NCBI GenBank assembly: GCA_038087875.1
Contig: CM075995.1
Location: 9,734,001-9,798,000, forward strand
DNA length: 64,000 nucleotides
Reading direction: 5' to 3'
From: Malacoraja senta
Lineage: Eukaryota
The position numbers and the translations under genes were made by a program. The notes below the pieces were generated by a model. The model saw only the letters and a list, made by a program, of their open reading frames with translations, ran no database searches and was not told the origin of the DNA. How positions within the stretch are numbered: position 1 is the stretch's first letter; each line of letters begins with the position of its first letter. Of the stretch, positions 1-32,700 are shown piece by piece.

Positions 1-3000
1 TTTCCTTTCTGCAGTCCATCAAACGTCTTCTTGTTGATGATCTTCGATTCCAACAACTCGCTGGCAGTAACCTTGTCCCGTAGTCCGGGGAAGAGTAGAT
101 GCTTCTTGGTCTCTGTTTCATCAATGGTGGTAATGATGAATTTAATGATGTGTTCGATGGTGACCTTTCCTGACCTGTACTGATGGATAAGGTCTCGGCG
201 TTGATCATCGGTTATATACTCCGAGTTGATCAACTCCCAGATTGTCACGGTCTTCCCAGAGAATTTTCCAGATGGGACACTCATCACAGCCTTTTGGAAA
301 ACGTCCTTGGTGATCTCCTCAGGGTGAAGGTGCACTCTCTTCACTGCTTCCTCTGTCAGGGGTAACAGGGAAAGGTGGGTCTCAGGGTCACTTCTGCATC
401 TCTGCTTCAGCTGTTGGTAGGTGACATGTTCGTCTGTATTTGGTTCAATGAAACCTTTAGTGTTCTCACTGGGAGTGGTCACCAATTGGTTCATTTCCTC
501 ATCGAACATTCCCCGCTTGTAGGCCACGTCCATGGGCAGCCGATGGCTGGTGTTGGGATCAATGATGCCACCAGATGCCACCTGTGCCTGCAGGAGCTGC
601 ACTCCATGATCTTTGGGTACCAGTTCCTTTCTCATTGCTTCAAACAAGGAGACCTTACGCCCGGTGTAAGGGTCCGTATATCCAGTTACCGCTTTCTCTG
701 CAGCCAGTAGCTTCTCATGGAGTTCAGGCCCAACGAGTCCATCCTTCACTGCCTCATCGACGGTGAGGGTGAGATTCTGCACAGGGTCAATGAGGAAACC
801 TGTTGCTGCCTGAGCTTCCAGTAAGATCTCCGCTGTTCTTGGTCTCAGCAGGTTCTTCTTCATTGCTTCATAGAAGCTCATTGTCTCCTGGGTAGGCTCC
901 ACAAACACTCCAGCAATGCTCTCCGACCCCTGAAGGAATTTCCTCACCGACTCCAACTTGCTCACATCTTCAGGTGTTGCCTTTCCTATCTGCAGTCCAT
1001 CAAACGTCTTCTTGTCGATGATCTTCGATTCCAACAACTCGCTGGCAGGAACCTTCTCCCTTAGTCCAGGGAAGAGCAGCTGTGGTTTTTTCTTTGTTTC
1101 TTTCTCTTCAATCACCGTGATGACAATTCTGATAATCTTTTCCACTGTCACCTTCCCTGACCGATACTGTCGAATCAGATCCTTCCTCTGCTCCTTGGTA
1201 AAGTACTCCGAATTAATAAGCTCCAAGATGCTGACAGTTTTCCCAGAGAAGATGCCAGCTGGAACAGACACTGTTGTCTTACCAAAAGTATCTCTGGTCT
1301 GCTCTTCATCATAAACAGGTTTTGATGATATTGCTTTCTCACTCAACGGCAAAAAGAGCTGACCTGACCCTGCATCCTTTCTGCACCTCTCCTTCAGCTG
1401 TTGGTAGCTGACGCTCTCATCCATGTTTGGATCATAGAAGCCCACCATGTTCTCACTGGGAGTGCTCACCAACAGGTTCATTTCCTCATCAAACATTCCC
1501 CGCTTGTAGGCCACGTCCATGGGCAGCCGATGGCTGGTGTTCGGATCAATTATGCCACCAGATGCCACCTGAGCCTGCAGGAGCTGCACTCCATGGTCTT
1601 TGGGCACCAGTTCCTTTCTCATTGCTTCAAACAAGGAGACCTTACGGCCGGTGTAAGGGTCCGTATATCCAGTTACCGCTTTCTCTGCAGCCAGTAGCTT
1701 CTCGTGGAGTTCTGGCCCAACGAGTCCATCCTTCACTGCCTCATCGACGGTGAGGGTGAGATTCTGCACAGGGTCCACGAGGAACCCTGTTGCTGCCTGA
1801 GCTTCCAGTAAGATCTCCGCTGTTCTTGGTCTCAGCAGGTTCTTCTTCATTGCTTCATAGAAGCTCATTGTCTCCTGGGTGGATTCCACAAACACTCCAG
1901 CGATGCACTCCGACCCCTGAAGGAATTTCCTCACCGAATCCAACTTGCTCACATATTCAGGTGTTGTCTTTCCTTTCTGCAGTCCATCAAACGTCTTCTT
2001 GTTGATGATCTTCGATTTCAACAGCTCGCTGGCAGGAACCTTGTCCCGAAGTCCGGGGAAGAGCAGCTGCTTCTTGGTCTCAGTTTCATCAATGGTGGTA
2101 ATGATGAATTTAATGATGTGTTCGATGGTGACCTTTCCTGACCTGTACTGCCACATTAGGTCCCGGCGTTGATCTTCGGTTATATACTCTGAGTTGATCA
2201 ACTCCCAGATTGTCACGGTTTTCCCAGAGAATTTTCCGGATGGGACACTCACCACAGCCTTTTGGAAAATGTCCTTGGTGACCTCTTCTGGGTGAAGGTC
2301 TACTCTCTTCACTGCTTCCTCAGTCAGGGGTAACAGGGAAAGGTTGGTCTCAGGGTCATTTCTGCATCTCTGCTTCAGCTGTTGGTAGGTGACATGTTCG
2401 TCTGTATTTGGTTCAATGAAACCTTTAGTGTTCTCACTGGGAGTGGTCACCAACTGGTTCATCTCCTCATCAAACATTCCACGCTTGTAGGCCACGTCCA
2501 TGGGCAGCCGATGGCTGGTGTTGGGATCAATGATGCCACCTGCTGCCACCTGTGCCTGCAGGAGCTGCACTCCATGGTCTTTGGGTATCAGTTCCTTTCT
2601 CATTGCTTCAAACAAGGAGACCTTATGCCCGGTGTAAGGGTCCGCATATCCCGTTACCGCTTTCTCCGCAGCCAGTAGCTTCTCATGGAGTTCTGGCCCA
2701 ACGAGTCCATCCTTCACTGCCTCATCGACGGTGAGTGTGCGATTCTGCACAGGGTCCACGAGGAACCCTGTTGCTGCCTGAGCTTCCAGTAAGATCTCTG
2801 CTGTTCTTGGTCTCAGCAGGTTCTTCTTCATTGCTTCATAGAAGCTCATTGTCTCCTGGGTGGGCTCCACAAACACTCCAGCGATGCTCTCCGACCCATG
2901 AAGGAATTTCCTCACTGACTCCAACTTGCTCACATCTTCTGGCATTGTCTTTCCTTTCTGCAGTCCATCAAACGTCTTCTTGTCGATGATTTTCGATTCC

Positions 3001-6000
3001 AACAACTCGCTGGCAGGAACCTTGTCCCGTAGTCCGGGGAAGAGCAGCTGTGGTTTTTTCTTTGTTTCTTTCTCTTCAATAACCGTGATGACAATTCTGA
3101 TGATCTTTTCCACTGTCACCTTCCCTGACCGATACTGTCGAATCAGATCCTTCCTCTGCTCCTCGCTAAAGTACTCCGAATTAATAAGCTCCAAGATGCT
3201 GACAGTTTTTCCAGAGAAGATTCCATCTGGAACAGACACTGTTGTCTTCCCAAACGTATCTCTGGTCTGCTCTTCATCATAAACAGGTTTTGATGATATT
3301 GCTTTCTCACTCAAATGCAACAAGAGCTGACCTGAGCCTGAATCCTTTCTGCACCTCTCCTTCAGCCGTTGGTAGCTGACGCTCTCATCCATGTTTGGGT
3401 CATAGAAGCCCACCGTGTTCTCATTGGGAGTGGTCACCAACTGGTTCATTTCCTCATCAAACATTCCCCGCTTGTAGGCCACGTCCATGGGCAGCCGATG
3501 GCTGGTGTTGGGGTCAATGATGCCACCAGATGCCACCTGTGCCTGCAGGAGCTGCACTCCATAGTCTTTGGGTACAAGTTCCTTTCTCATTGCTATAAAG
3601 AGGGAGACCTTACGCCCGGTGTAAGGGTCCGTATATCCCGTTACCGCTTTCTCTGCAGCCAGTAGCTTCTCATGGAGTTCTGGCCCAACGAGTCCATCCT
3701 TCACTGCCTCATCGACGGTGAGGGTGCGATTCTGCACAGGGTCAACGAGGAACCCTGTTGCTGCCTGAGCTTCCAGTAAGATCTCCGCTGTTCTTGGTCT
3801 CAGTAGGTTCTTCTTCATTGCTTCATAGAAGCTCATTGTCTCCTGGGTGGGCTCGACAAACACTCCAGCGATGCTCTCCGACCCCTGAAGGAATTTCCTC
3901 ACCGACTCCAACTTGCTCACATCTTCAGGTGTTGCCTTTCCTTTCTGCAGTCCATCAAACGTCTTCTTGTTGATGATCTTCGATTCCAACAACTCGCTGG
4001 CAGGAACCTTGTCCCGTAGTCCGGGGAAGAGTAGGCGCTTCTTAGTCTCAGTTTCATCAATGGTGGTAATGATGAATTTAATGATGTGTTCGATGGTGAC
4101 CTTTCCTGACCTGTACTGCCACATAAGGTCCCGGCGTTGATCTTCTGTTATATACTCTGAGTTGATCAACTCCCAGATTGTCACGGTTTTCCCAGAGAAT
4201 TTTCCGGATGGTACACTCAACACAGCTTTTTGGAAAATGTCCTTGGTGACTTCCTCTGGGTGAAGGTCCACTCTCTTAACTGCTTCCTCCGTCAGGGATA
4301 ACAGGGAAAGGTTGGTCTCAGGGTCACTTCTGCATCTCTGCTTCAGCTGTTGGTAGGTGACATGTTCGTCTGTATTTGGTTCAATGAAACCTTTAGTGTT
4401 CTTACTGGGAGTGGTCACCAACTGGTTCATCTCCTCATCAAACATTCCCCGCTTGTAGGCCACGTCCATGGGCAGCCGATGGCTAGTGTTGGGGTCAATG
4501 ATGCCACCAGATGCCACCTGTGCCTGCAGGAGCTGCACTCCATGGTCTTTGGGTACAAGTTCCTTTCTCATTGCTTCAAACAAGGAGACCTTACGCCCGG
4601 TGTAAGGGTCTGTATATCCCGTTACTGCTCTCTCCGCAGCCAGTAGCTTCTCATGGAGTTCTGGCCCAACAAGTCCATCCTTCACTGCCTCATCGACAGT
4701 GAGGGTGAGATTCTGCACAGGGTCAACGAGGAACCCTGTTGCTGCCTGAGCTTCCAGTAAGATCTCCGCTGTTCTTGGTCTCAGCAAGTTCTTCTTCATT
4801 GCTTTGTAGAAGCTCATTGTCTCCTGGGTGGGCTCCACAAACACTCCAGCAATGCTCTCCGACCCCTGAAGGAATTTCCTCACTGACTCCAACTTGCTCA
4901 CATCTTCAGGTGTTGCCTTTCCTTTCTGCAGTCCATCAAACGTCTTCTTGTCGATGATCTTCGATTCCAACAATTCGCTGGCAGGAACCTTGTCCCTTAG
5001 TCCGGGGAAGAGCAGCTGTGGTTTTTTCTTTGTTTCTTTCTCTTCAATCACCGTGATGACAATTCTGATGATCTTTTCCACTGTCACCTTCCCTGACCGA
5101 TACTGTCGAATCAGATCCTTCCTCTGCTCCTCGGTAAAGTACTCCGAATTAATAAGCTCCAAGATGCTGACAGTTTTCCCAGAGAAGATGCCAGCTGGAA
5201 CAGACACTGTTGTCTTCCCAAAAGTATCTCTGGTCTGCTCTTCATCATAAACAGGTTTCGAATATATTGCTTTCTCACTCAAGGGCAACAAGAACTGACC
5301 TGACCCTGCATCCTTTCTGCACCTCTCCTTCAGCCGTTGGTAGCTGACGTTCTCATCCATGTTTGGATCATAGAAGCCCGTGTTCTCACTGGGAGTGGTC
5401 ACCAACTGGTTCATCTCCTCATCAAACATTCCCCGCTTGTAGGCCACGTCCATGGGCAGCCGATGGCTGGTGTTGGGGTCAATGATGCCACCAGATGCCA
5501 CCTGTGCCTGCAGGAGCTGCACTCCATGGTCTTTGGGTACCAGTTCCTTTTTCATTGCTTCAAACAAGGAGACCTTACGCCCGGTGTAAGGGTCCGTATA
5601 TCCTGTTACGGCCTTCTCTGCAGCCAGTAGTTTCTCATGGAGTTCTGGCCCAACGAGTCCATCCTTCACTGCCTCATCGACGGTGAGGGTGCGATTCTGC
5701 ACAGGATCCACGAGGAACCCTGTTGCTGCCTGAGCTTCCAGTAAGATCTCCGCTGTTCTTGGTCTCAGCAGGTTCTTCTTCATTGCATCATAGAAGCTCA
5801 TTGTCTCCTGGGTGGGCTCAACAAACACTCCAGCAATGCTCTCTGACCCCTGAAGGAATTTCCTCACCGACTCCAACTTGCTCACATCTTCAGGTGTTGC
5901 CTTTCCTTTCTGCAGTCCATCAAACGTCTTCTTGTTGATGATTTTCGATTCCAACAACTCGCTGGCAGGAACCTTGTCCCGAAGTCCGGGGAAGAGCAGC

Positions 6001-8951
6001 TGCTTCTTGGTCTCAGTTTCATCAATGGTGGTAATAATGAATTTAATGATGTGTTCAATGGTGACCTTTCCTGACCTGTACTGCCACATAAGGTCCCGGC
6101 GTTGATCTTCTGTTATATACTCTGAGTTGATCAACTCCCAGATTGTCACTGTTTTCCCTGAGAATTTTCCGGATGGGACACTCACCACAGCCTTTTGGAA
6201 AACGTCCTTTGTGACCTCCTCTGGGTGAAGGTCCACTCTCTTCACTGCTTCCTCTGTGAGGGGTAACAGGGAAAGGTTGGTCTCAGGGTCACTTCTGCAT
6301 CTCTGCTTTAGCTGTTGGTAGGTGACATGTTCATCTGTATTTGGTTCAATGAAACCTTTAGTGTTCTCACTGGGAGTGCTCACCAACTGGTTCATTTCCT
6401 CATCAAACATTCCCCGCTTGTATGCCACATCCATCGGCAGCCGATGGCTGGTGTTGGGATCAATGATGCCACCAGATGCCACCTGCGCCTGCAGGAGCTG
6501 CACTCCATGGTCTTTGGGTACCAGTTCCTTTTTCATTGCTTCAAACAAGGAGACCTTACGCCCGGTGTAAGGGTCCGTATATCCCGTTACCGCTTTCTCT
6601 GCAGCCAGTAGCTTCTCATGGAGTTCTGGCCCAACTAGTCCATCCTTCACTGCCTCATCGACGGTGAGGGTGCGATTCTGCACAGGGTCCACGAGGAACC
6701 CTGTTGCTGCCTGAGCTTCCAGTAACATCTCCGCTGTTCTTGGTCTCAGCAGATTCTTCTTCATTGCTTCATAGAAGCTCATTGTCTCCTGGGTGGGCTC
6801 CACAAACACTCCAGCGATGCTCTCCGACCCCTGAAGGAATTTCCTCACTGACTCCAACTTGCTCACATCTTCTGGCATTGTCTTTCCTTTCTGCAGTCCA
6901 TCAAACGTCTTCTTGTCGATGATCTTCGATTCCAACAACTCGCTGGCAGGAACCTTGTCCCTTAGTCCGGGGAAGAGCAGCTGTGGTTTTTTCTTTGTTT
7001 CTTTCTCTTCAATCACCGTGATGACAATTCTGATGATCTTTTCCACTGTCACCTTCCCTGACCGATACTGTCGAATCAGATCCTTCCTCTGCTCCTCGGT
7101 AAAGTACTCCGAATTAATAAGCTCCAAGATGCTGACAGTTTTCCCAGAGAAGATTCCAGCTGGAACAGACAGTGTTGTCTTCCCAAAAGTATCTCTGGTC
7201 TGCTCTTCATCATAAACAGGTTTCGATGATATTGCTTTCTCACTCAAGGGCAACAAGAGCTGACCTGACCCTGCATCCTTTCTGCACCTCTCCTTCAGCT
7301 GTTGGTAGATGACGCTCTCATCCATGTTTGGATCATAGAAGCCCACCGTGTTCTCACTGGGAGTGGTCACCAACTGGTTCATCTCCTCATCAAACATTCC
7401 CCGCTTGTAGGCCACGTCCATGGGCAGCCGATGGCTAGTGTTGGGGTCAATGATGCCACCAGATGCCACCTGAGCCTGCAGGAGCTGCACTCCATGGTCT
7501 TTGGGTACCAGTTCCTTTTTCATTGCTTCAAACAAAGAGACCTTACGCCCGGTGTAAGGGTCTGTAAATCCCGTTACCGCTCTCTCTGCAGCCAGTAGCT
7601 TCTCATGGAGTTCTGGCCCAACGAGTCCATCCTTCACTGCCTCATCGACGGTGAGGGTGAGATTCTGCACAGGGTCAACGAGGAACCCTGTTGCTGCCTG
7701 AGCTTCCAGTAAGATCTCCGCTGTTCTTGGTCTCAGAAGGTTCTTCTTCATTGCTTCATAGAAGCTCATTGTCTCCTGGGTGGGTTCCACAAACACTCCA
7801 GCGATGCTTTCCGACCCCTGAAGGAATTTCCTCACCGATTCCAACTTGCTCACATCTTCAGGTGTTGCCTTTCCTTTCTGCAGTCCATCAAACGTCTTCT
7901 TGTCGATGATCTTCGATTCCAACAACTCGCTGGCAGGAACCTTGTCCCGTAGTCCAGGGAAGAGCAGCTGCTTCTTGGTCTCAGTTTCATCAATGGTGGT
8001 AATGATGAATTTAATGATGTGTTCGATGGTGACCTTTCCTGACCTGTACTGCCACATTAGGTCCCGGCGTTGATCTTCGGTTATATACTCTGAGTTGATC
8101 AACTCCCAGATTGTCACGGTTTTCCCAGAGAATTTTCCTGATGGGACACTCACCACAGCCTTTTGGAAAACGTCCTTGGTGACCTCCTCTGGGTGAAGGT
8201 CAACTCTCTTCACTGCTTCCTCCGTCAGGGATAACAGGGAAAGGTTGGTCTCAGGGTCACTTCTGCATCTCTGCTTCAGCTGTTGGTAGGTGACATGTTC
8301 GTCTGTATTTGGTTCAATGAAACCTTTAGTGTTCTCACTGGGAGTGGTCACCAACTGGTTCATCTCCTCATCAAACATTCCCCGCTTGTAGGCCACGTCC
8401 ATGGGCAGCCGATGGCTGGTGTTGGGGTCAATTATGCCACCAGATGCCACCTGAGCCTGCAGGAGCTGAACTCCATGGTCTTTGGGTACCAGTTCCTTTC
8501 TCATTGCTTCAAACAAGGAGACCTTACGCCCGGTGTAAGGGTCCGTATATCCCGTTACTGCTTTCTCTGCAGCCAGTAGCTTCTCATGGAGTTCTGGCCC
8601 AACGAGTCCATCCTTCACTGCCTCATCGACGGTGAGGGTGCGATTCTGCACAGGATCCACGAGGAACCCTGTTGCTGCTTGAGCTTCCAGTAAGATCTCC
8701 GCTGTTCTTGGTCTTAGCAGGTTCTTCTTCATTGCTTCATAGAAGCTCATTGTCTCCTGGGTGGGTTCCACAAACACTCCAGCAATGCTCTCCGACCCCT
8801 GAAGGAATTTCCTCACCGACTCCAACTTGCTCACATCTTCAGGTGTTGCCATTCCTTTCTGCAGTCCATCAAACGTCTTCTTGTCGATGATCTTCGATTC
8901 CAACAACTCGCTGGCAGGAACCTTGTCCCGTAGTCCAGGGAAGAGCAGCTG
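1..8951 (-). repeat. Coding tandem array of PRD+linker units; unit starts at 8951, 7970, 6983, 6002, 5018, 4037, 3050, 2069, 1082, 101
   Basis: Spacings are 981, 987, 981, 984, 981, 987, 981, 987, 981, all multiples of 3. The same periods appear in the recurring antisense ORFs at 958, 1945, 2926, 3913, 4894, 5878, 6859, 7846, 8827. Confidence 0.96.
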
Positions 8952-10435
8952 CTTCTTGGTCTCAGTTTCATCAATGGTGGTAATGATGAATTTAATGATA
9001 TGTTCGATGGTGATCTTTCCTGACCTGTACTGACGGATAAGGTCCCGGCGTTGCTCTTCAGTGATATACTCTGAGTTGATCAACTCCCAGATTGTCACGT
9101 TTTTTCCAGAGAATTTCCCGACTGGCACAGATACAGTGGCTGTTTTGAAGATGTCGTGTGTCTGTTCCATGGTATATCCTCCCTTTTTTGTCTCTGCTCC
9201 CTCGGTCAATGGCAATAGAAAAAGGCCAGATTCCTGATCCTTCTGACACCTGTCCAGCAGCTGGAGGTACGTTAAGTTCTCCTGTGTGTTGGGGTCAAAG
9301 AATGCCTTGGCATTGTCACTGTCTCCTGCAACTATTGTATTCATGTCCTCTGTGAATATACCCTGTTTGTATGCTTGGGCCAGGGGCATGCGATGGCTGT
9401 TCACTGGATCAATGACACCACCAGTGGCAATCTGTGCCTGCAGCAAACGGATGGCGTAACTTGGGGAGATCAAGTCCTTTTGCATTGCTTGAAATAAGGA
9501 GATCTGGTCGCCAGTGTAGGGGTCCCTGTAACCTGTCACTGCCCTCTCTGCAGAGAGCAGTTTCTCCTGCAGCTCTGGTCCGACCACTCCCTCCCTGATG
9601 GCCTCGTTGACGGGCAGTTTCCTGTTCTTTGCTGGGTCAATGATGAAGCCGGATGCTGCCTGAGCCTCCAGCAACACCGTAGCTGTGGTGGGCTTTAATT
9701 GTCCCCTTTTCATTGCCTGGTAAATGCTGACTTTCTCCTTTGAGGGCTGAATGATCAGGCCAGCAACACAGCTCTTGCCCTGCAGATAGTTCTGAACATC
9801 TTCCTTCTGTGACAGATCCTTGACGGAGACGGATCCTTTCTTCAGTTTGTCCAACTGCTTCTTGCTGAGAATGCCCACCTGATGTAAGCGAGCGGCTGGC
9901 ACTGACTGGCGCAGGCCACTGAAGGAGAACGCAGCCTCGGCACTTTCCTGGGCAGAGTCCACCACATCCCGACCGTTGGCAAGAGCTCCCAGAGTGGGGG
10001 CAGTCGCTGCCTGCACTTTGGCGGTCTCTTTGGATATGACTTCAAGCTTCTGAGCTTTCAGTTGCTCCAGCAATTCCCTGAGTGCTTGGTTCTCATCAGC
10101 CAGCTGCTTCTCTTTCTCCTGTCTCCTCTTCTCCATTTCCTGAAGCTCTCTCTGCTTCTCCTGGACTTGGTCCTCAGCCTCTCTCTGCATCCTGAGTGCT
10201 TCATCCATACTATCCTGAAGTCGGGCCTTGTCGTCCTTGAGTTTCTTCATTTCCATCATCTGTTCATCCTTCAGAGACTTGGATTTCTGCAGCTCATCCT
10301 CATATAGATGCTCCAACTTCTGCTTCTCCGCCTCAATCATCTTCTCTTTCTGATCAGCAGCTCCTTTTCACTGAGAAAGGATTGTTGAAGGACCTGTGTG
10401 GTGTGGACAATTTCTTTCTTTTTCCCTGCCTCCAT
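1..10435 (-). CDS. PLEC: PLEC terminal exon (32-equivalent), partial: rod end plus at least 11 plakin repeat domains; apparent -1 frameshift at ~10353
   Basis: gtgcag|ATG GAG GCA gives [27 protein letters not shown]. After the shift it reads [20 protein letters not shown]...LANGRDVVD...[13 protein letters not shown]. The same codon phase holds at 10352, 8951 and 59, and the ORF track shows no stop-terminated ORF in this frame. Confidence 0.95.
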
Positions 10436-13400: not shown

Positions 13401-16400
13401 CATGGCCAGCCATGTGTGGAGACACGGCACATGGGTGAGATTTTCAATGAATATTTCTAAGCTAATTTGAAAAGAACAGCGCAACACAGAAACAGGGCCA
13501 TTGGCCCAAAATGTCCTTGCCCAACATGATACCAAACTAATCTAATCTTGTCTGCTTGCACGTGATCTATATCCCTCCATTCCATGCACATCCATTTGCC
13601 TACCTTAAACCTTCTTATGCACCCACTATCATATCTGCTTCCACTACCGACCCTGGTAAAACATCGAAGCTGTTAAGGGTCGTGCCATTTACTGTATTCT
13701 TCAATGAACTCTCAAAGTGCACACCAAACACATGCCCGGATCAAACTCCATCTGCCATTTCTCTGCCTATATATGTTGGCGATCTGTATTCCACTTTATC
13801 CTTTATGCCTTCCTCAATGTCAGATGACTCAAATGTTGGTGTCATCTACAAGCCTAATAATCAACACTTATGTCCAAATCATTCATATATATATTATATA
13901 TTATATATTAGTGTGTGTGTGTGTGTGTGTATGTGTGTGTGCGCACATATATATNNNNNNNNNNNNNNNNNNNNNNNNNNNNNNNNNNNNNNNNNNNNNN
14001 NNNNNNNNNNNNNNNNNNNNNNNNNNNNNNNNNNNNNNNNNNNNNNNNNNNNNNNNNNNNNNNNNNNNNNNNNNNNNNNNNNNNNNNNNNNNNNNNNNNN
14101 NNNNNNNNNNNACAGACCTCCAGCCTGAATAATGTTCTTCCATCACAACCCTCTGTCTTCTAACAGTAAACCAGTCTGAATTGAAACAACCAAGTCACCG
14201 TGAATCTCAAGTATCTTAATCTTCTGGATCAGCTACACAAGGGAATGTCTTACTAACATCCATGTAGACAATATCCATTGCCCTATTCTCACTGATCACC
14301 TTTGTCACCTCCTCGAAAACTCAATGAACTTAGTAAAACATGCTAACTGTCCCTAATTAGCCCATTATCTTCCTAATTGGAACAACCTGTCTGGAAGAAT
14401 CCTCTGACATCTTCCTTTGAGGCACACCGGCCATTTTTTTCCTGGATTATCCGCATCTCCCTAGTTTATCTTTATTTCCATTCTTAAACAAGACTTCATC
14501 AATTCCATTGGGCTTTGGGGATTTATCCATCTTAATGCTCTATAAGAGGCCCAATACTACCTTCTACTTGATCTCAAACTGCCCTTGCCTATTACTTTAT
14601 TCCACGCGGATCTCACTGTCCCCCATGTCCTTCTCCTTGGAGAATACCCCAATCGTACATTAAGGTTAGGGTTACTTCAAGTAACCCCTGCATTCCCCTC
14701 TCTCCATCCCTCCGCTTTCCCAGTTCTCCGACAAGTCTGACTGTCTCCGAGTACATTATATCTCTGTTTGCTTTGTTGTTACCTTCTGCTAGCTAACCAT
14801 GATCTATCCTACATTTTCCATGATCTACATCCACCTTTGTCCTGGTTTCACACCTTACACTTCCTTATCTACGTATTTCCCTCTCCCATGACATCAGTCT
14901 GAAGAAGGGTCTCGACCCAAAACATCACCCATTCCTTCGCTCCAGAGATGCTGCCTGTCCGGCTGAGTTACTCCAGCATTCTGTGCCAATCTTCGGTTTA
15001 AACCAGCATCTGCAGTTCCTTCCAACACAACCCCTCATAATATAGGTGTCCCATCCCGTCACCCTCCTCCACTCCAGGATATTATTGCTATTGATGGAGT
15101 GCAGCGTACGTTCACCAGGTTAATTCCCGGGATGGCGGGATTGACGTATGATGAAAGAATGGGTCGACTGGGCTTGTATTCACTGGAATTTAGGATGAGA
15201 GGATATCTTATAGAAATATATAAAATTATTAAGGGATTGGACAGAATGCAGGAAAAAATGTCCCGATGTTGGGGGAGTCCAGAACCAGGGGTCACAGTTT
15301 AAGAATAAGGGGTAGGCCATTTAGAACTGAGATGAGGAAAAACCTTTTAACACGGAGAGTTGTGAATTTGTGGAATTCTCTGCCTCAGACGGCAGTGGAG
15401 GCCAATTCACAGGATGCATTCAAGAGTGAGTTAGATTTAGCTCTTAGGGCTAAGGGAATCAAGGGATATGGGGAGAAGACAGGAGCGTGGTACTGATTGT
15501 GGATGATCAGCCGTTATCACATTGAATGGCGATACTGGCTCGAAGGGCCGAATAGCCTACTCCTGCACCTGTGTTCTATGTATCTATGTAACAGGACCAA
15601 CCTCCCTAATCTCTCCTTGTACCTGAGCTGTCCTTTCTCAACCTGGGTACAATGAGGTCAGGTCAGCAAGGATCAGATCAGGTCAGGACCTACCTCCTTG
15701 GTTTTCTGCTGCAGCAACTCTGCCTCTTTCCTCAGCTTCTCCTTCTCACTCTCCAACTCAGCGATAGCCATCTGCAACTCGCTCGCCTCCTGCTTGCTCT
15801 GCTTCCACTGGTGCTCCAGTCTCTCCACAATGCTGTTCTTTTCCCTGGTGCTCTGCTCAGTTTCATGAAGCCTCAAGCCGATCTGTTTTGCCTCATCCTT
15901 GAACTTCTGAGCCTCTCTCTCTGCCTTGCCCTGGGCATCTGTCAGTTCCGATACCAGGGCCTTCAGCTGATCGGCTTCGTCGCTGATCTCCTGTTGCCGT
16001 CTCCGCTCCTCCTCCAAAGCCTTCTGGAACTCCTCTGCCTCCTCATGGCGACGTTGCTGCATCTCCTGCTTGTCCTTTGACAGTTTCTTGGCCTGCTGCT
16101 GCGCCTTGTCTCTCTGCTTCTGCAGCATCTCAGCCTCGGCCTTTAGCCTGCTCGCCTCCTGGATGGCCTGCATCTTCTCCTTCAGCATCTTGTCGGCCAG
16201 AGCCCGCTGCTGGGCCAGGTCTTCCTCAGCCAGTCTCCTCTGCCGGGCAGCCTCCTGGGCTTCCACGCTAAGGCGGGCCGCCTCCTCTGCCAGCTGCCGC
16301 ATCTTCTTTGCCTCCTCCGCCAGGTGCTTCTGGGTGTTGTCCTTGTCCTTCAGCACCAGCATCTTGTTCTCCTCCTCGATCCTGCCCTTCAGTTTGATCA

Positions 16401-19400
16401 GCTCCTCCATCTGTACCCGCACCTTCAGGAGCTCCCCCTCCGCCTGGTTCTTCTGCTTCATGGACTCGCTCACCTCAGCCTTCAGCCGCTGCAGCTCTTC
16501 GTCCAGCACCTCCTTCTGGTGGTCCGTCTGCTCCAGACGCAGCTTGATCTTGGCCAGCTCCTGCTCCACGCTGGCCTTCTGCCGCAGGGTCTGCTCCGCA
16601 AACTTCTTGTGCTTCTCCATGTCGGCGTCAGCGGCTTGCTTCTGCCTCAGAGCTGCCTGCTCGGCCTGTGCTCTCCGTGCAGCTTCCAGCTCAGCCTCCT
16701 TCCTCTGCTGCTCGGCAGCCTGCTGGGCCTGGGCCTTGAGGCCAGCCTCCTGCTCGGCCTGTTGCTGCAGCCGCTCCGCCTCCTCGGCTTGCTGTCTGCA
16801 CAGGGCGGCCTCGCGCTCTGCCTGCACCCGGGCCTGCTGGGCCTCTTCGGCCAGTCGCCGGGCCTGCTCGGCCTGCTCCCGCAGGCTGCCCAGCGCACTC
16901 TGTTCCTGTAGCCGGCTCTGCAGCAACTCCTCCTCCTTCTGCTGCACGGCTGCCTGGTGCGCCTTCTCCTCGGCCACAAGCCGCTGCTGGGCCGCCTCCT
17001 GGGCAAGGCTGACCTGCCTGTCTGCCTCTTGCTCCGCCACCTCTTTCTGCTTCCACGCCTCCTCCGCCCTCCTCTTCAGCCGCTTCACCTCCTCCAGGGC
17101 TGCCTGCCGCTGTCGCCCTGCCTCCTCCTCTGCCGCCAGGATCTCCTTTACTCTGCGCTCTGCCTCCTGCCTCCTCCTCGCCTCCTCGCCCGCCATCCCT
17201 CGCTGCCTCTCTGCTTCCTCCTCCGCCTCCTGCTTGCTGCGCTGAGTCTCCTCAGCCACCCTCTTCAGCTTGGCCAGCTCGATCTCCAGGTCTGACTTGC
17301 CCTCTGAGGCCTTCTCGAAGTTGAGCTTCAGGACCCTGATCTCCTCCTCCACAATACGCCTCTGCTTCAGGGTCTCCTCCACCACCACCTTCTGCCGCTC
17401 CAGCTCCACATCCGAGCTCTTCCTCAGCTGCAGAATCCTTTTCTCAATGTCCTGCTTATGCTGCATGGCTTGTTCTTCCAGAAGCTTCCGTTGAAAGGCC
17501 TCGTCTTCAGCCAGGCGCCGCAAGCGCTCGTTCTCCGCTTCTTTCTCCTTCAGAACCATCTCAGCCTCCGTCTTCAGACGGGTTCCTTCGTTAATGGCTG
17601 CCAGCTTCTCCTTCAGGATCCTCTCTGCCTCGCTGCGCTGATGCACCACCTCTTCCTCGGCAAGCTGCCTCTGCCGTTTAGCCTCCTCCGCCACAGCCCG
17701 CAGCCTGCCCGCCTCGTCGGCCAGCTGCCTCATCCTCTCCGCCTCCTTCTCCAGGATCTGCTTGGTCTTCTCTGAGGTGGACCTGGTCTCCTCCTCCGTC
17801 TTCACTTTCAGCAGCAGCAAGGCCTCCATCTCGGCCTTCACCCGGGCCAGCTCCTCCTCCAGCAGCTTCCTCTGGTGGAGGACCTGGTTCACCTCATTCT
17901 TCAGTCGGTACAGTTCCTCCTCCAGGAGCAGCCTTTGCTGCTCCCCGTTGTCAGTCTCTGCCCGCAGCCGGATGAGCTCCTGCTCGGCAGCCAGCTTTTG
18001 CCCGGCTGTCTGGTCCGCCAGCCGTCTCTGTTTCTCCAGCTCCTGCTCCGCCATGTCCTTCTGCCGCAGCGCCGACTCCTCCGTCTTTGTCCTGCGCCTC
18101 GCCTCCCGGTCCGCCTCCTCCTTCTGCTTCTCTGCCTCCTCTTGCGCCAGTGATTTCTGGAGAGCCACCTCCTCTGCTTGTAACCGCAGGCGCAGAGCCT
18201 CGTTGGCCTTCTGCCTCCACTTCTCCAGCTCCATCTCCGCGCCCTCCTGCAGCCTCTTCAGCTCGGCCGCCTCCTGCTGCAGCTGGGCCACCGTCTGGTG
18301 CTCCTGCTGCAGGGATATCTCCAGCTGTAGCGTCTTCTCCTCGAAGGACATGCGCTTGCTCTGCAGCTCAGCCGCCGCACTTTTCCGGGCCACCTCTTGG
18401 GTCACCAGCAGTTGCTTCTCTTTTTCAATCTCTGCCTGCTTCATCCTCCGCTCCACCTCCTCCGCCACGTTCTTGAAGTGCTGCAGGTCCTCCAAGGCCT
18501 TCTGCTTCTCCCGAGCTGCGTCCCTCTCCGCCTGGATCTTCACCTTCAGCTGCTCCTCTGCCTGCTTCTTCTTGGACGTCTCATCATTGACCTGCCGGAG
18601 CAGTCTCTCTGCCTCATCCTGCGCCGTCTTCCTCTGCCGGTCTGCCTCATCTGCGCGACTCTTTAGCTGCAGCAGCTCTGATTCTGCCGCCGCTTTCTGC
18701 TTCTGCGCTGTCACCAGCTGGACATGGATAATGCGGATCTCCTCCTCCACCTTGGTACGACTGAGCAGCACCTCCTCCACCATGACAGTCTTTTTCCTGA
18801 TCTCCATCTCGGAGGAGCTTTGCAGCTGCTGGAATTCTTGCTGCACGTTCTGCTTCTGTTGCTCAGCATCCACTGCCACGGCCTCCCTCCTGGTCACCTC
18901 CTTCTCGATCCTCTGCTGCAGCTCCTTGGCCGCTTTCTCTGCCTCCACCTTGGCCTTGGCGTGGGCTGCAGCCAGCTCCTTCTGCCTCTCCAACTGCGCC
19001 TCCACCTCTTCCAGCCGCCGACGTTCCTCCTCCTTCATCTTCTCAGCAGCTTCCTAAAGACCAACACACAAGGGCAGGGTTAGTGAGGGAGCGGTCTCGG
19101 GCAGTGGAAGAGATGAGTGTAGTTGTGCAGACCCCGTTCACCAACACACGAGGGCAAGGTCAGTGAGGGGCAGGGTTAGTGAGGGAGCATTCCCACCCTG
19201 TGGAAGAGATGAGTGTAGGTGTGGAGACCCCGTTCACCAACACACAGGCGCAGGGGCAATGAGGGGCAGGGCCAGTGAGGGGCAGGGCCAGTGAGGGGAA
19301 GGGCCAGTGAGGGGCAGGGCCAGTGAGGGGCAGGGCCAGTGAGGGGCAGGGCCAGTGAGGGGCAGGGCCAGTGAGGGGCAGGGCCAGTGAGGGGCAGGGC

Positions 19401-22400
19401 CAGTGAGGGAGCATTCCCACACTGTGGAAGAGATTACTGTAGTTGTGAAGACCCCGTTCACCATCACACAATGAGCCGGGGCTGGGTCTAGTTCAGCCCC
19501 TCCTCCCACCGGGCGCAGGAACTGCCTGATCACTGTGAGGTCAACACCGCGACTCCCACTGGGGGAGGGGAGGGAACTCTGGATCCCACTGGGAGAGGGG
19601 ATGGAGTTCTGTATCCCACTGGGAGGGGATGGAGTTCTGGATCCCACTGGGAGAGGGGACGGAGCTCTGGAACACTGCGAGAGGGGCAGGAATGTCAGAT
19701 ACCAGCTGGGGGTGAGAATGCTGGGAAATGGCAGGGTGCTTTGGAATACCAGTGGGAAGGGGGGTGGGGGGTGCACAGGGTGCAGTGGGGCACAGGGTGT
19801 GAGGGTGGACAGGATCTCACTGGAAGGAACAGCACAAGACATCAGGATGACAGAAAGCTGCAGAGATGTTGGGAGTGGTGGGCAGGAATACCACAGGGCA
19901 ATATCACCACAGCACAGTGATGGGGGAGGGCATGGACTATCCCGGCAATGAACACTCACACAACCCTGGAGCAGCCGAACCTTGATGGTGACACTTGACC
20001 CCGTCCCCGTCCCCTGTCCCCCTCGACCCATCCCCCCCGGCTACTCCCCGGACCCATCCCCCGACCCGTCCCCTCAAACCACCCGACCCATCCCCCCCAA
20101 TCCCCCAAACCGCCCCCCCCCCTCAATCCCCCGACCCATCCCCCGACACTTCCCACACCCGTCCCCCTCGACCCACCCATCCCCCCCGAGCCAACCCCCC
20201 ATCCCCTCGACCCATCCCGTCCCCCCGACCTCTCCTCCGAACCCATCTCCCCCCCATCCCATCCCCCTCAGCCACTCCCCACCCCCCCCCGACCCATCCC
20301 ACCCAGGGACTGCCGGTCACCTGAGCCATCTCCCCCTACCAGCTCCCAGTCACACAGACCACCGATCCCATGGACAGGGTTCTCGCCCACAGCACCCTGG
20401 ACCCTGAAGACCAGCCTATGCCAGAGGTGAGGGAGTGGATGGGAGACACAGAGCCGCTCTATGGCAAGGGTGGGCGCAGACACAGTGACTGATGGTGCGG
20501 CAGGGACAGCAGTGAGCATGCACAGACAGCAAACAGCAGGGTGACAAAGCGCAATTACCTTCACGGCCGCCAACCAACACACACATTCGCTGTGGCAAGC
20601 GCTGCACGAGAAAGCAGGGAGAAGTGTCAGCCTATAACAGCTCAGCTCAGGCAGCTAGGAAAGGCAGCTCACACTCACACCAACGCTCACACTCACCACC
20701 ACTCATTCACCATCACTCACACCAACGCTCACACTCACCCCTGCTCAATCAATCAGTTTTTATTCATCACATACACAATAAAGTGCAATGAAATGAATTT
20801 GCCAGCAGCTCACACACACCAATGCTCACACTCATCACTGCTCACACTCACACCAATGCTCACACTCACACCAATGCCCACACTCATCGCTGCTCACTCA
20901 CACCAATGCTCACCCTCACACCAATGCAACAGTCAACCACCACTCACAAACAACCCTGCTCACACTCGATCATACTACTGCTCAGTCAACCATCACTCAC
21001 ACACACACAAATGCTCACACTCATTCCCCTGTTCAGTCACACCTCTGCCGAATCACACCGACTCACACACACACAGAATCACACACACACTGACCCACAC
21101 TGTGGAATTCTCTGCCTCAGAGGGCGGTGGAGGCAGGTTCTCTGGATGCTTTCAAGAGAGAGCTAGATAGGGCTCTTAAAGATAGCGGAGTCAGGGGATA
21201 TGGGGAGAAGGCAGGAACGGGGTACTGATTGGGGAAGATCAGCCATGATCACATTGAATGGCCTACTGCACCTATTGTCTATTGTCCCACTGACTCACAC
21301 ACTAACCCACAAACCGCTGACCCACACACACTGACTCACACACTGACCCACACACACACACACACTGACCCCCCACANNNNNNNNNNNNNNNNNNNNNNN
21401 NNNNNNNNNNNNNNNNNNNNNNNNNNNNNNNNNNNNNNNNNNNNNNNNNNNNNNNNNNNNNNNNNNNNNNNNNNNNNNNNNNNNNNNNNNNNNNNNNNNN
21501 NNNNNNNNNNNNNNNNNNNNNNNNNNNNNNNNNNNNNNNNNNNNNNNNNNNNNNNNNNNNNNNNNNNNNNNNNNNNNNNNNNNNNNNNNNNNNNNNNNNN
21601 NNNNNNNNNNNNNNNNNNNNNNNNNACACACACACACTGACCCACACACACACTGACCCACACACACACACACTGACCCACACACACACTGACCCACACA
21701 CACACTGACCCACACACACACTGACCCACACACAAGCACACAGTGACCGCTCACCCTGACCAACCTCTGCAAGTATCCCATCCACATGCCGCACAAGTGA
21801 TCAAAAACCACACCGGCCTCCCCTTGCCCATGCGGTCACACCCCCACACCCTGCCCACCTCTACACACACTGCCCCTGACCACTACATAGTGTCCCTGAC
21901 CACTACCTCAAATTGTGTTTCTGATTTTCTTCTTTTTGGTGTTTTTGGAAGGAATTCTGTCCCTGATTTATGTATTGGTCTTTATAACCTTTTTTTTTTT
22001 TAAATTCTGATTATATGTTTTCTATAAATCTCTGTATGGTGTCCTTGAGACCTCGGTATAAGGCGCCCGTAAATAAAATCCATTATTATTATTATTACAC
22101 ACACTGCCAGTGACCACTACACACACTGCGGTGACCACTACACAGACTGCCAATGACCACTACATAATGTCCCTGACCACTACACAGACTGCCAGTGACC
22201 ACTACACACACTGCGGTGACCACTACACAGACTGCCAGTGACCACTACATAGTGTCCCTGACCACTACACAGACTGCCAGTGACCACTACACAGACTGCC
22301 AGTGACCACTACACAGACTGCCAGTGACCACTACACAGACTGCCAGTGACCACCACACACACTGCCAGTGACCACTACACAGACTGCCAGTGACCACTAC

Positions 22401-23457
22401 ACACACTGCCAATGGCCACTACGCAGACTGCCAGTGACCACTACACACACTGCCTCTGCCCCCAACTGCCGTAGCCTCACCTCCTCGTTCTCCAGCCGAT
22501 GCAGGGTGACAGTGATGAACTTCAGGTACTGGCTGGACAGTGTCATCAGCTCAATGTAGCGACTCCTCAGATCCACAACCTGCAACGAGAGCACAAAACA
22601 GGCTGAGTCTAGACAGCACAGAACAGGCTGAGTATAGAGAGCGCAGAGCAGGCTGGGTGCATAGAGCACAGAACAGGCTGGGTGTAGAGAGCACAGAACA
22701 GGCTGGGTGTAGAGAGCGCAAAACAGGCTCGGTGTAGAGAGCGCAGTACAGGCTGGGGGTAGAGAGCGCAGAACAGGCTGGGTGTAGAGAGCGCAGAACA
22801 GGCTGGGTGTAGACAGCACAGAACAGGCTGGGGGTAGAGAGCACCGAACGACCCAGGTGTAGAGAGCACAGAACAGGCTGGGGGTAGAGAGCACCGAACA
22901 GGCTGGGTGTAGAGAGCGCAGAACAGACTGGGTGTAGAGCATAGAACAGGCTGGGGGTAGAGCGTGCAGAATGTGCTGGAGTAGAGCTCGCACTGGCCAT
23001 GTGCTGTGGTTGGGCTCCGCAGAAATGATGGGAGATATTTGGTGGATGGGTTGGAGGGAGATGGGGAATAAATGCCATCCACCCAAGTGTGTTATTTGTC
23101 CATAACTCATTGGTTGGTGGAAGTCCGAAACAACGACACCTTCATGAATCCTGGGTGAAGTCACAGTCCTAGTGCAGCGTAGGCACAGACCCTTTGGCCC
23201 AACCAGTCAATGCTGTTCACTCCCATAAGGAGGGGGTGGGGGACATGTCACTGGATGTGTGGGAAGTTCTCCAGGGGAGAGAGATGTTGGTGACTGGATT
23301 CCCACCTCCTGAATGACGTTGTCTGATGCTGAGACCAGCTTCTGCTTCTTCACAGGAGACGCCACAGGTTCACTCTGGACTTTGTATGTCACCAACTGGA
23401 GCTCATAGTCCTGAAATGCAGAGACAGTCGGTGAGGATCCACGGTGTGGGTGTGTGG

Positions 23458-29700: not shown

Positions 29701-32700
29701 AGTCATTTGCAAGAGCCAAAAGCACCACTTTGCTAATCTGTTTGGTTAGTTGTACACTGTCAGTAAACCCTGGGACTGATGCTACCTACTGTCGCCTTGT
29801 TTACGACGACTCCTTGCAGCATCTGGGTGACCACTCCATCATCTCCCATTATCCTTCTCAAACCCTGGCCTGACATCAGGGGAACAGGAGCCAGTTACTG
29901 AGCAGGACCAGAAAGGTTGTCATTGGATTACTGCTCCAGCCCGTGTGTCCATGATGGCTGAGGATGGTGCAGGGGGTGGCTTAAGGCTCCCTGCATCACT
30001 GGAGATGATCAAACGTTGTGTGGGTACAGTCCAGGAACAATCAGGTTGTGGCTGATTACAGATCACTGCACAGTGAACAGGAGATGGAGGAACAGATGTG
30101 GCAGCAGCTATCAAAGACCAACCAGGGAAGATTACTGGGTCAAATCTTGAGGGGAGAGGAACACAGCGAGTCAGCCAGCATCCTGTCACTTCCGAGGTGG
30201 CTGCTTGCTTGTGACATGATGTTGTACACACTCCCACACACACCCACCTTCAGCTGTTGTTTGTAAGACTCCAGAGATGTGCTATCAGCGGGAACACTGT
30301 TCACATCTTTCAGCTGCTTCTCGTACTTCTTCACCAGGTCTTCAGCCTCTTGCGTGACGCGAATCACAACCTCGATGGTCTTCAGCCTGCAGAGGGGGCA
30401 AGATCCTCAGTGACACAGGGACACTTTCAGCTGCACTGCATACTGACGCAGGGACCATTCCTGTCATGATGATCAAGTGCAACAGGCAATGTCAGCTTTG
30501 ATGGTGGGTGCACATGCACACGTGAGGATCCACGGTGAGGGTGCACACGCACACGTGAGGATTGATGTAAGTTAATGTGAGCCAATGTACCTCCACTTTT
30601 TAAGAAAGGAGGTAGAGAGAAAATGGGGAATTATAGACCAGTTAGCCTAGCATCGGTTGTGGGGAAGATGTAGGGGAAGATGTAGGGGAAGCATCGGTTG
30701 TGGGGAAGAGTCAATTATTAAAGATGTAATAACAGCACATTTGGAAAGCAGTGACAGAATCGGTCAAAGTCAGCATGGATTTATGAAGGGGAAATCATGC
30801 TTGATTAATCTACTGGAATTTTTTGAGGATGTAGAAAGTAGAATGTATAAGGGAGAGCCAGTGGATGTGGTGTATCTGGACTTTCAAAAAGCCTTTGACA
30901 AGGTCCCACACAAGAGATTAGTGCAAAATTAGAGCACATGGTATTGGGGGTAGGGTATTGACATGGATAGAGAACTGGTTGGCAGACAGGAAGCAAAGAG
31001 TAGGAATTAACGGGTCATTTTCAGAATGGCAGGCAGTAACTAGTGGGGCGCCACAAGGCTCGGTGCAGGGACCCCAGTTATTTACAATATATATTAACGA
31101 TTTAGACGAGGGAATTAAATGTGGCACCTCCAAGTTTGCGGATGACACAAAGCTGGGTGGCAGTGTGAGCTGCGATGAGGATGCTGTGAGGCTACAGGGT
31201 GACATGGATAGGTTGGGTGTGTGGGCAGAAGCATGGCAGATGCAGTATAATGTGGATAAATGTGAGGTTATCCACTCTGGTGGGAAGAACAGGAAGGCAA
31301 ATTATTATCTGAATGGTGTCAGATTAGGAAAAGGGAGGGTGCAACAAGACCTGGGTGTGCTTATACATCAGTCACTGAAAGTAAGCATGCAGGTACAGCA
31401 GGCAGTGAAGAAAGCTAATGGCATGTTGGCCTAAATTGCTAGAGGATTTGAGTACAGGGGCAAAGAGTTCCTACTGCAGTTGTACAGGGCCCTGGTGAAA
31501 GCGCACCTGGAGTATTGTGTGCAATTTTGGTCTCCTAAATTGAGGAAGAACATTCTTGCTATTGAGGGAGTGCAGCATAGGTTCACCAAGTTAATTCCCG
31601 GGATGGCGGGTGTGACATATGATGAAAGAATGGGTCTAATGGGCTTATAGGGCCGAATGGCTCGGTGCCAAATGGCCTACTCCGGCACCTATTTTCTATG
31701 TTGAATGGTGACGGTGCACTTGAGGTGTGACAGTACACGTGGATACGTGAGGTGAGACGTGACAGTGCACGCGGACACGTGAGGTGTGACGGTACACGCG
31801 GACACGTGAGGTGGGACGGTGCACGCGGACACGTGAGGTGTGACAGTACACGCGGACACGTGAGGTGTGACAGTGCACGCGGACACGTGAGGTGTGACGG
31901 TGCACGCGGACACGTGAGGTGGGACGGTGACAGTGCACGCGGACACGTGAGGTGTGACAGAGCACGCGGACACGCGAGGAGTGACGGTACACGTGGACAT
32001 GTGAGGTGTGACGGTACACGTGGACACGTGAGGTGTGACGGTGACGATACACGTGGACACGGGAGGTGTGACGGTACACGTGGACACGTGAGGTGTGACG
32101 GTGACGATACACGTGGACACGTGAGGTGTGACGGTGACGATACACATGGACACGTGAGGTGTGACGGTACACGTGGACACGTGAGGTGTGACGGTGACGA
32201 TACACGTGGACACGTGAGGTGTGACGGTACACATGGACACGTGAGGTGTGACGGTGACGATACACGTGGATGTGAGGTGTGACAGTACACGCGAGGTGAT
32301 GGTGACAGAGCACGCGGACACGTGTGGTGTGATGGTGACAGTGCACACGGACACGTGAGGTGTGACGGTGACAGTGCACGCGGACACGTGAGGTGTGACA
32401 GTGACAGTGCACGCGAACACGTGAGGTGTGACGGTGACAGTGCACGCGGACACGTGAGGTGTGACAGTACACGCGGACACGTGAGGTGTGACGGTGACGG
32501 TACACGCGGACACGTGAGGTGTGACGGTGACGGTACACGCAGACACGTGAGGTGTGACAGTGACGGTACACGCGGACACGTGAGGTGTGACAGTACACGC
32601 GGACACGTGAGGTGTGACGGTGACGGTACACGCGGACACGTGAGGTGTGACGGTGACGGTACACGCGGACACGTGAGGTGTGACAGTGACGGTACACGCG

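Follow-up and report, generated by a model that had tools for sequence, protein, structure and literature searches.

Partial concerted evolution of a plectin repeat array across two tail types in the skate Malacoraja senta

The DNA considered here is a stretch of 64,000 nucleotides from Malacoraja senta (GenBank assembly GCA_038087875.1, contig CM075995.1, positions 9,734,001 to 9,798,000 of the forward strand), the whole of which is termed the window. Judged by its reading frames and exon matches, the window holds most of a plectin gene (PLEC orthologue). The giant last exon of this gene encodes at least ten tandem filament-binding domains, namely plakin repeat domains (PRDs), in units of about 984 bp, each comprising a core of ~620 bp that is alike throughout the array and a tail that alternates between two types, termed A and B. 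In cartilaginous fish, cores and tails have conflicting histories, and the array is a clean case, though one with precedents, in which concerted evolution has affected part of a repeat only.

The plectin locus and its repeat array

A single stop-free frame of 3455 codons runs along the minus strand from position 10367 to position 3 and continues past the window edge, with no other long open frame being found within 12 kb of the window start. The exon containing this frame begins at an acceptor (cag/ATGGAG) at 10435, and the protein it encodes has its best database match in the thorny skate, Amblyraja radiata (plectin isoform X1, 98% identity). When compared with the last-exon frame, the Pfam Plectin repeat profile (PF00681) gave an E-value of 3e-150, with 10 stretches in 1129 amino acids. 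Directly upstream of the giant PRD exon lies the plectin rod exon, which is 97.5% identical to residues 726-1846 of Amblyraja plectin. When N-terminal parts of Amblyraja and Hemitrygon plectin served as tblastn queries, ~25 collinear matches were obtained between 22.4 and 58.9 kb, revealing the presence of N-terminal actin-binding and plakin-domain exons in the gene, the first exons lying outside the window (Table 1). In the unique parts of the protein, identity is 97.3-98.3% to Amblyraja and to Leucoraja erinacea each, and 93.6-95.9% to Rhinoraja. The 3' end of the last exon lies beyond the window start; in Amblyraja, Leucoraja and Rhinoraja, PRD4, PRD5, a basic linker, a C-type PRD6 and a GSR-rich tail are present. 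Near the start of the exon, the window departs by one base from the frame of the orthologous proteins, with the Amblyraja and Leucoraja proteins reading straight across this site. Since the 3455 codons downstream are open, an assembly indel near 10347 is probably responsible.

Table 1. Positions within the window of the plectin exons, the PRD1 unit, the array units (U1 to U9) and the frame discrepancy.
Feature	Positions	Strand	Basis
Giant last exon of plectin (rod end, PRD1, A/B unit array); continues past window start	3-10435	minus	open frame, acceptor, Amblyraja match, PF00681
One-base frame discrepancy relative to orthologous proteins, near exon start (~10347)	10340-10355	minus	ELLIRK-encoding frame stops, long frame continues
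PRD1 unit, 325 amino acids, distinct in both core and tail type	8949-9923	minus	hmmsearch match, amino acids 149-473
Last 175 nt of PRD1 tail (linker module), same sequence family as 3' end of every A tail	8949-9123	minus	nucleotide identity, protein tree of second part of tail
U1, type A, 981 bp (core 8326-8948, tail 7968-8325)	7968-8948	minus	motif and alignment
U2, type B, 987 bp (core 7345-7967, tail 6981-7344)	6981-7967	minus	motif and alignment
U3, type A, 981 bp	6000-6980	minus	motif and alignment
U4, type B, 984 bp, one codon shorter (TGFYDPN rather than TVGFYDPN)	5016-5999	minus	motif and alignment
U5, type A, 981 bp	4035-5015	minus	motif and alignment
U6, type B, 987 bp	3048-4034	minus	motif and alignment
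U7, type A, 981 bp	2067-3047	minus	motif and alignment
U8, type B, 987 bp	1080-2066	minus	motif and alignment
U9, type A, 981 bp	99-1079	minus	motif and alignment
Tenth unit, first 32 codons, remainder cut by window edge	3-98	minus	open frame and profile match
Plectin rod (coiled-coil) exon	15694-19053	minus	1126-amino-acid open frame; acceptor tttag/GAAGCT, donor AAGGAG/gtaggt
Upstream plectin exons (plakin domain and others), repeat-rich introns between	22454-58938	minus	~25 collinear tblastn exon matches

PRD1, the core of which is orthologous to PRD1 of all vertebrates in the core tree described below and is only ~52-58% identical to the array cores, is followed by nine complete units and a tenth that is cut by the window edge. 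Each unit begins with the motif LLFPGLR, encountered at positions 8948, 7967, 6980, 5999, 5015, 4034, 3047, 2066, 1079 and 98. These starts match the extent of the array (101-8951) given in an earlier, sequence-only reading of the window, as do the two unit lengths of 981 and 987 bp described there, apart from the 984 bp of U4; the peptide strings quoted in that reading are likewise present in the open frame.

The nine complete units were next aligned and compared, with alignment columns 1-623 taken as core and columns 624-987 (the last 364 bp) as tail. Not one fixed nucleotide difference between A and B units was found in the cores, which are 95.4-96.1% identical at each lag, that is, whether one or as many as eight units apart. 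By contrast, the tails contain 107 fixed A/B differences and are 94-96% identical at even lags and 61-62% identical at odd lags, with types A and B alternating strictly across the nine units. When the type labels of the tails were subjected to exact permutation, identity was 95.7% within types as compared to 61.3% between types (1/126). The claim of the sequence-only reading that the first ~620 bp are shared by all copies while the rest alternates between two types is thus confirmed. Its description of the cores as nearly identical is correct insofar as these are alike at every lag, but it passes over the 4-5% of nucleotides that differ and a synonymous divergence (dS) of ~0.14. Indeed, 60 singleton core sites are distributed across the nine units, such that every unit carries private differences.

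The same contrast between cores and tails is seen at silent sites. For cores, dS is 0.13-0.15 and alike for A-A, B-B and A-B pairs, whereas for tails, dS is 0.08-0.16 within a type and saturated between A and B tails, for which nonsynonymous divergence (dN) reaches 0.34. Within the window, therefore, synonymous sites of the cores have been homogenised as well. The dN/dS ratio among copies is 0.12-0.29 overall, corresponding to 0.12-0.16 in cores and 0.14-0.29 in tails. Divergence among cores is star-like, flat across lags and equal to the within-type divergence of tails. When informative core sites were considered, 17 of 25 were found to be common to A and B units, with the eight that are type-restricted comparing to 7.2 expected were type irrelevant. 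Moreover, 149 of 300 core site pairs fail the four-gamete test, and three core sites spanning 145 bp are common to U2 (type B) and U5 (type A). Type-restricted sites are unevenly placed, making up 7 of the 10 informative sites in core columns 1-132 versus 1 of the 15 in the other 480 bp, with no such linkage being seen at the 3' end of the core.

Histories of cores and tails in cartilaginous fish

Two database searches provided the plectins of nine other cartilaginous fish and of many bony vertebrates. Separate trees were generated from core residues 1-205 and tail residues 206-327 of nine elasmobranch proteins, with units having been assigned to type groups by their tails ahead of core-tree construction. 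In the tail tree, all A tails form one clade (support 97-99) and all B tails form another (90-99), while a single skate tail clade is rejected by the approximately unbiased (AU) test (p 9e-11). In the core tree, by contrast, units group by lineage (skates, 95; batoids, 97), and clades comprising all A cores and all B cores are rejected (AU p 9e-80 and 2e-7, respectively). Paralogous cores are thus closer to each other than to their orthologues, as is characteristic of concerted evolution, and the tails are not; this effect is not visible within the Rajidae. That the cores do not split into A and B clades as the tails do, together with the AU rejections, the contrast in dS and the loss in batoids of a patch of type-specific core residues that sharks retain, agrees with the earlier proposal that A/B differences were erased from the cores and spared in the tails.

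Both tail types are recognisable in every elasmobranch examined and, in recognisable form, in chimaera as well. When PRDs were counted using a profile of the unit, seven were found in the plectins of Callorhinchus and Carcharodon, nine in Mustelus, 10 in Stegostoma, Heterodontus and Hemitrygon, 12 in Narcine and Amblyraja, 14 in Leucoraja and 15 in Rhinoraja. The presence of the two types in each of these elasmobranchs, together with PRD numbers of 7 to 15 per protein, supports the idea that an old A/B pair was amplified. The same profile detected six PRDs in bony vertebrates, with periods of 326, 331, 339, 240 and 396. Separately, PRD4-PRD5 are duplicated in the X13 model of Antechinus flavipes plectin (periods 240, 337 and 240), and a Prochilodus magdalenae model of 7094 residues contains 15 PRDs and may be a plectin-epiplakin fusion model.

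The extent to which A and B cores have been made alike differs between lineages. Fixed A/B core residue differences number 12-25 in four sharks, 13 in Hemitrygon, 9 in Narcine and 0 in each of three skates. In nearly all species, the first ~110-150 core residues are without fixed A/B differences, and the boundary of the homogenised tract varies between lineages. Sharks have common type-diagnostic core residues at unit positions 152, 154, 155 and 161, whereas in batoids, both types are A-like at three of these positions. Lineage-specific residues are also spread over unit types, as reflected in Q71 and L192 of Rhinoraja (10 of 10 units and PRD3), T150 of Amblyraja (six of seven units and PRD3) and 18 such sites upon comparison of the window with Narcine. 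Finally, the PRD3 core is 93-94% identical to A and B cores in skates, 83-92% in sharks and stingray, and 76% in chimaera; in bony vertebrates, PRD2 and PRD3 cores are 64-68% identical. Taken together, these comparisons of predicted proteins indicate that homogenisation of cores across tail types recurs in cartilaginous-fish plectin and that it is complete in skates.

Turning to the tails, both types are under purifying selection, skate-shark conservation is 75-81%, equal to that of the folded cores, and a stretch of ~20 residues is type-specific even in chimaera. Within cartilaginous fish, A and B tails are sister types, with low support (81). In terms of identity, A tails are slightly nearer to linker 1 of bony vertebrates (0.53 vs. 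0.43) and B tails are equidistant, such that linkers 1, 2 and 3 are barely discriminated. By position, the PRD2 tail has its counterpart in either B or the terminal A, with neither choice favoured by identities or by trees of two tail sub-regions. Given the low support for the sister grouping and such poorly discriminating identities, the parallel that the sequence-only reading draws to linkers 1 and 2 of tetrapods is weak.

Position of the break, filament binding and unit order

To relate the units to known structures, desmoplakin PRD-B (PDB 1LM7, 5DZZ) was aligned with unit residues 2-245 (E 5e-83), and the 4.5 repeats of ~38 residues forming a globular domain that define a plakin repeat domain are found in the array units. 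The break between core and tail falls at unit residue 207/208, ahead of the last half-repeat and, because the desmoplakin alignment covers residues 2-245, inside the folded domain. The earlier placement of this border between a PRD core and a linker therefore does not hold, as the supposed linker includes the last ~36 residues of the folded PRD. The tail instead comprises three parts, namely the last half-repeat of the PRD, the short variable stretch that follows (the ~20 residues that are type-specific even in chimaera) and a linker module predicted by AlphaFold to be folded.

An AlphaFold model of the product of positions 6252-8948 (minus strand) presents a mean predicted local distance difference test score (pLDDT) of 86 and hairpin-helix-helix repeats. 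Between the PRDs, in both A and B tails, a folded linker consisting of a hairpin and two or three helices is predicted (pLDDT 60-84). With a predicted template modelling score (pTM) of 0.37, the model was used for secondary structure and confidence, and not for contacts of a tail with the neighbouring core. The predicted linker module (model residues 265-326 and 592-652) ends in a long helix that enters the next PRD.

Residues implicated in filament binding were considered next. Unit residues K123, K/R129, K142 and R180 align with envoplakin R1895, K1901, R1914 and R1952, respectively; accordingly, four of the six basic residues named for the envoplakin groove are K or R in all nine cores. In envoplakin, mutation of K1901 and R1914 disrupted filament localisation in cells (PMC4782060). 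As the equivalents of both are among the four basic residues retained, the extra units would probably add filament-binding sites, yielding a plectin with more binding modules, as in epiplakin. A more elaborate functional view, which is doubtful, would have the A and B tails, each with its half-repeat, a type-specific stretch older than the chimaera-elasmobranch split and a folded module, serve as distinct selected connector states that set the spacing or orientation of interchangeable cores. Elasmobranch plectin would then be a tunable, epiplakin-like multivalent crosslinker of intermediate filaments, with valency being set by copy number in the dimer register.

The order of units after PRD1 was compared between species, with A' denoting the terminal A unit. 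In the window, the order is A B A B A B A B A and continues past the window edge, whereas it is A B B A B A A' in Amblyraja, A B B A B A B A A' in Leucoraja and A B A A B A A B A A' in Rhinoraja. A B-B adjacency is thus common to Amblyraja and Leucoraja, and A-A adjacencies are found in Rhinoraja. Such adjacencies in the predicted proteins indicate that crossovers in a one-unit register occur and that strict alternation is not conserved. In the Rhinoraja longicauda plectin-like protein (residues 2503-6116), the order suggests a higher-order period of three units, unlike the two-unit period of the window; core identity in this protein is only marginally higher at lag 3 (0.9735) than otherwise (0.968-0.971).

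Examination of the upstream edge of the array revealed another likeness. The last 175 nt of the PRD1 tail are 90-91% identical to the ends of A tails (e.g., 7968-8142) and 66% identical to the ends of B tails, with identity falling sharply to ~50% in the 77 nt just upstream. In the protein tree of the second part of the tail, internal A tails (last 65 residues) and the PRD1 linker module cluster together species by species, while the end of the terminal A unit differs. The PRD1 and A-tail linker modules represent a third, older exchange domain, marking where the array begins upstream. Their likeness fits duplication of a two-unit block through unequal crossing-over of the PRD1 module with the terminal-A module, with later conversion between PRD1 and A linker modules being the alternative.

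Origin of the array and comparison with known systems

The rajid plectin array probably reflects growth in a two-unit register, together with old and repeated exchange of cores in a one-unit register across two ancient tail types. According to this explanation, cartilaginous fish would have inserted extra PRDs, bearing two old tail types, between PRD1 and PRD3. Growth of the array by unequal crossing-over in the two-unit (1968-bp) register would generate the A-B alternation by itself. Exchange in the one-unit (~984-bp) register, be it by gene conversion or by unequal crossover between cores of unlike type, would repeatedly have overwritten the first ~620 bp of the units, partially in sharks, more so in rays and completely in skates, where the PRD3 core is included. 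Recombination requires homology, and we infer from this general principle that the tails, at ~60% identity, probably escaped because they are too diverged to pair as recombination substrates, to which purifying selection on each tail type may add. In the species of the window, the last round of homogenisation and amplification would be old, as reflected in a dS of ~0.14 and star-like divergence.

Several observations weigh against such an explanation. A faint type signal is left in the cores, where exact permutation of type labels gave 95.6% identity within types as compared to 95.2% between types (3/126), with this signal sitting mostly at sites in the first 132 bp. When the nine cores were subjected to a Sawyer permutation test of the GENECONV type, no significant conversion tract was detected (global p > 0.7), and a test resembling the pairwise homoplasy index (PHI) was marginal (p 0.05). 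Of the informative core sites, 10 of 28 are CpG transitions and possibly recurrent. Within the Rajidae, core similarity is no higher within species than between species. In addition, the cross-species data consist of proteins only, taken from automatic gene models of which three are flagged as being of low quality, and the unit orders of such arrays are prone to mis-assembly.

The lack of a significant tract, the CpG sites, the star-like divergence and the lack of a within-species excess of core similarity in the Rajidae together make the exchange look old and episodic and not visibly ongoing, with at most low-level exchange since the last round. Since cores are no more alike within than between rajid species, exchange after the radiation of this family has been slight. 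Ongoing gene conversion, as in a strong form of the earlier account, therefore finds no backing in either the tract test or the dS of ~0.14 among copies.

A rival history is one in which a single conversion or crossover in the skate ancestor created an A-B dimer with identical cores and this dimer was then amplified, with no later core exchange between A and B. Star-like and flat core divergence equal to the within-type divergence of tails (dS ~0.14), the lack of significant conversion tracts and the small within-type excess in core similarity are all in keeping with a single founder. The scenario is nonetheless unlikely. Variants common to A and B cores, such as those spanning 145 bp in U2 and U5, are as frequent as would be the case without type structure, and residues specific to Rhinoraja or Amblyraja are found in A, B and PRD3 cores alike. 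Likewise, the B-B and A-A adjacencies need events in a one-unit register after founding, and partial homogenisation is seen independently in sharks, rays and chimaera.

It is also quite improbable that core gene conversion is ongoing and that selection keeps A and B in strict alternation on account of a functional need for alternating linkers. Such selection could be read into the retention of both tail types in all cartilaginous fish examined, the conservation of tails between skates and sharks to the same degree as cores, a tail dN/dS of 0.14-0.29, the strict alternation over the nine units of the window, and the stretch following the last half-repeat that is type-specific even in chimaera. 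Yet unit order departs from strict alternation in three other skates, an array amplified in the two-unit register alternates without any selection, recent conversion tracts cannot be detected, and lineages differ in where the homogenised tract ends. As such, the functional importance ascribed to linker alternation in the sequence-only reading is not upheld. A functional difference between A and B tails is judged possible; a requirement for their alternation is unlikely.

Mis-assembly of a repeat as the source of the array, or of the sameness of its cores, is very improbable. Repeats of ~1 kb at 95% identity are admittedly hard to assemble, the one-base discrepancy near 10347 means that the sequence is not error-free, and public short-read contigs on 3047-8948 are fragments of 50-975 nt that offer no confirmation of long-range order. 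At the same time, the units carry private differences, including the 60 singleton core sites, within one open frame of 3455 codons, and the same A and B units recur in assemblies made independently for Amblyraja, Leucoraja, Rhinoraja and six other elasmobranchs. Pieces at 97-100% identity are furthermore found in independent runs, among them a contig of 975 nt that extends from an A tail into the next core. These contigs place the sequence in independent runs, some apparently of RNA, and confirm neither unit order nor transcription. Lastly, that strong purifying or convergent selection made the cores alike with no DNA exchange is barely credible, as core dN/dS is indeed low (0.12-0.16) and groove residues are conserved, but selection on the protein cannot explain a dS of only 0.14 between A and B cores when dS between the A and B tails of these units has reached saturation, PRD2 and PRD3 cores of bony vertebrates, under like constraint, are only 64-68% identical, and lineage-specific residues are common to different unit types.

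Growth in a two-unit register with core exchange in a one-unit register has partial parallels in known systems. Tandem families such as the globins, the opsins and ribosomal DNA, where coding and spacer regions differ in this respect, undergo partial gene conversion, with tracts being bounded by diverged flanks. As in those families, part of the skate plectin unit is homogenised, the adjoining part escapes, and conflict between segment trees is diagnostic. Unlike those families, both segments lie in one coding exon and one folded domain, and the part that escapes comprises two types on a two-unit register. Domain arrays in general, including the super-repeats of nebulin, expand by duplication of several domains at once, giving rise to a higher-order period (Bjorklund et al., 2006; PMC1553488). 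The present array departs from this pattern in that a second, shorter exchange register would overwrite part of each unit.

Within the plakins, a comparison can be drawn with epiplakin. The last 5-8 repeats of epiplakin are near-identical, and it is the whole PRD-plus-linker unit that is homogenised, whereas in skate plectin, only the first 623 of ~984 bp are homogenised, across two old tail types. The two are alike in that a single giant exon encodes many tandem type-B plakin repeat domains and linkers. They differ in that epiplakin consists only of PRDs encoded by one exon, with neither a plakin domain nor a rod, while the skate gene contains a rod and upstream plectin exons. Epiplakin was also considered as the identity of the gene itself, and was ruled out by the presence of these same exons. 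Epiplakin (EPPK1) contains variable arrays of highly similar PRDs, the copy number of which varies between and within species (Ueo, 2021; Takeo, 2003; Spazierer, 2003; all cited in PMC8782857), and its near-identical repeat blocks have been read as the outcome of recent duplication or homogenisation (PMC8782857).

Comparison with the canonical vertebrate plectin, with its six PRDs (five B-type and one C-type), shows orthology in exon order, in the rod, in PRD1 and PRD3-PRD6, and in the C-terminal GSRRGS tail. In the canonical protein, however, PRD2 and PRD3 evolve as orthologues, whereas in cartilaginous fish, cores from PRD2 to PRD3 evolve in concert. A search of the literature on concerted evolution of plakin repeats, gene conversion in plectin and cartilaginous-fish plectin yielded no account of plectin arrays that are expanded or partly homogenised. 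Plectin is commonly regarded as having a six-domain tail of fixed size, but in cartilaginous fish its filament-binding domains number 7 to 15 or more, a point of relevance to plakin biologists when comparing plectin with epiplakin. More generally, two recombination registers would appear to have acted on one array within a single exon and a single protein fold, with an effect that is graded from partial in sharks to complete in skates. While this class of mechanism is familiar and no long-standing question is opened, the array offers a convenient natural system for considering what stops a conversion tract, be it sequence divergence or selection.

Apart from the repeat array, the introns of the gene also contain repeated sequences. 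One plectin intron (35294-41341) contains a 6-kb, G-rich minisatellite with a 17/18-nt unit, GGGGGGGAGAGGGGACAG, present in ~340 copies, with a GC content of 0.75-0.78 and a GC skew of +0.85. Additional intronic minisatellites were noted at 22096-22962, 31717-33266 and 43084-44074.

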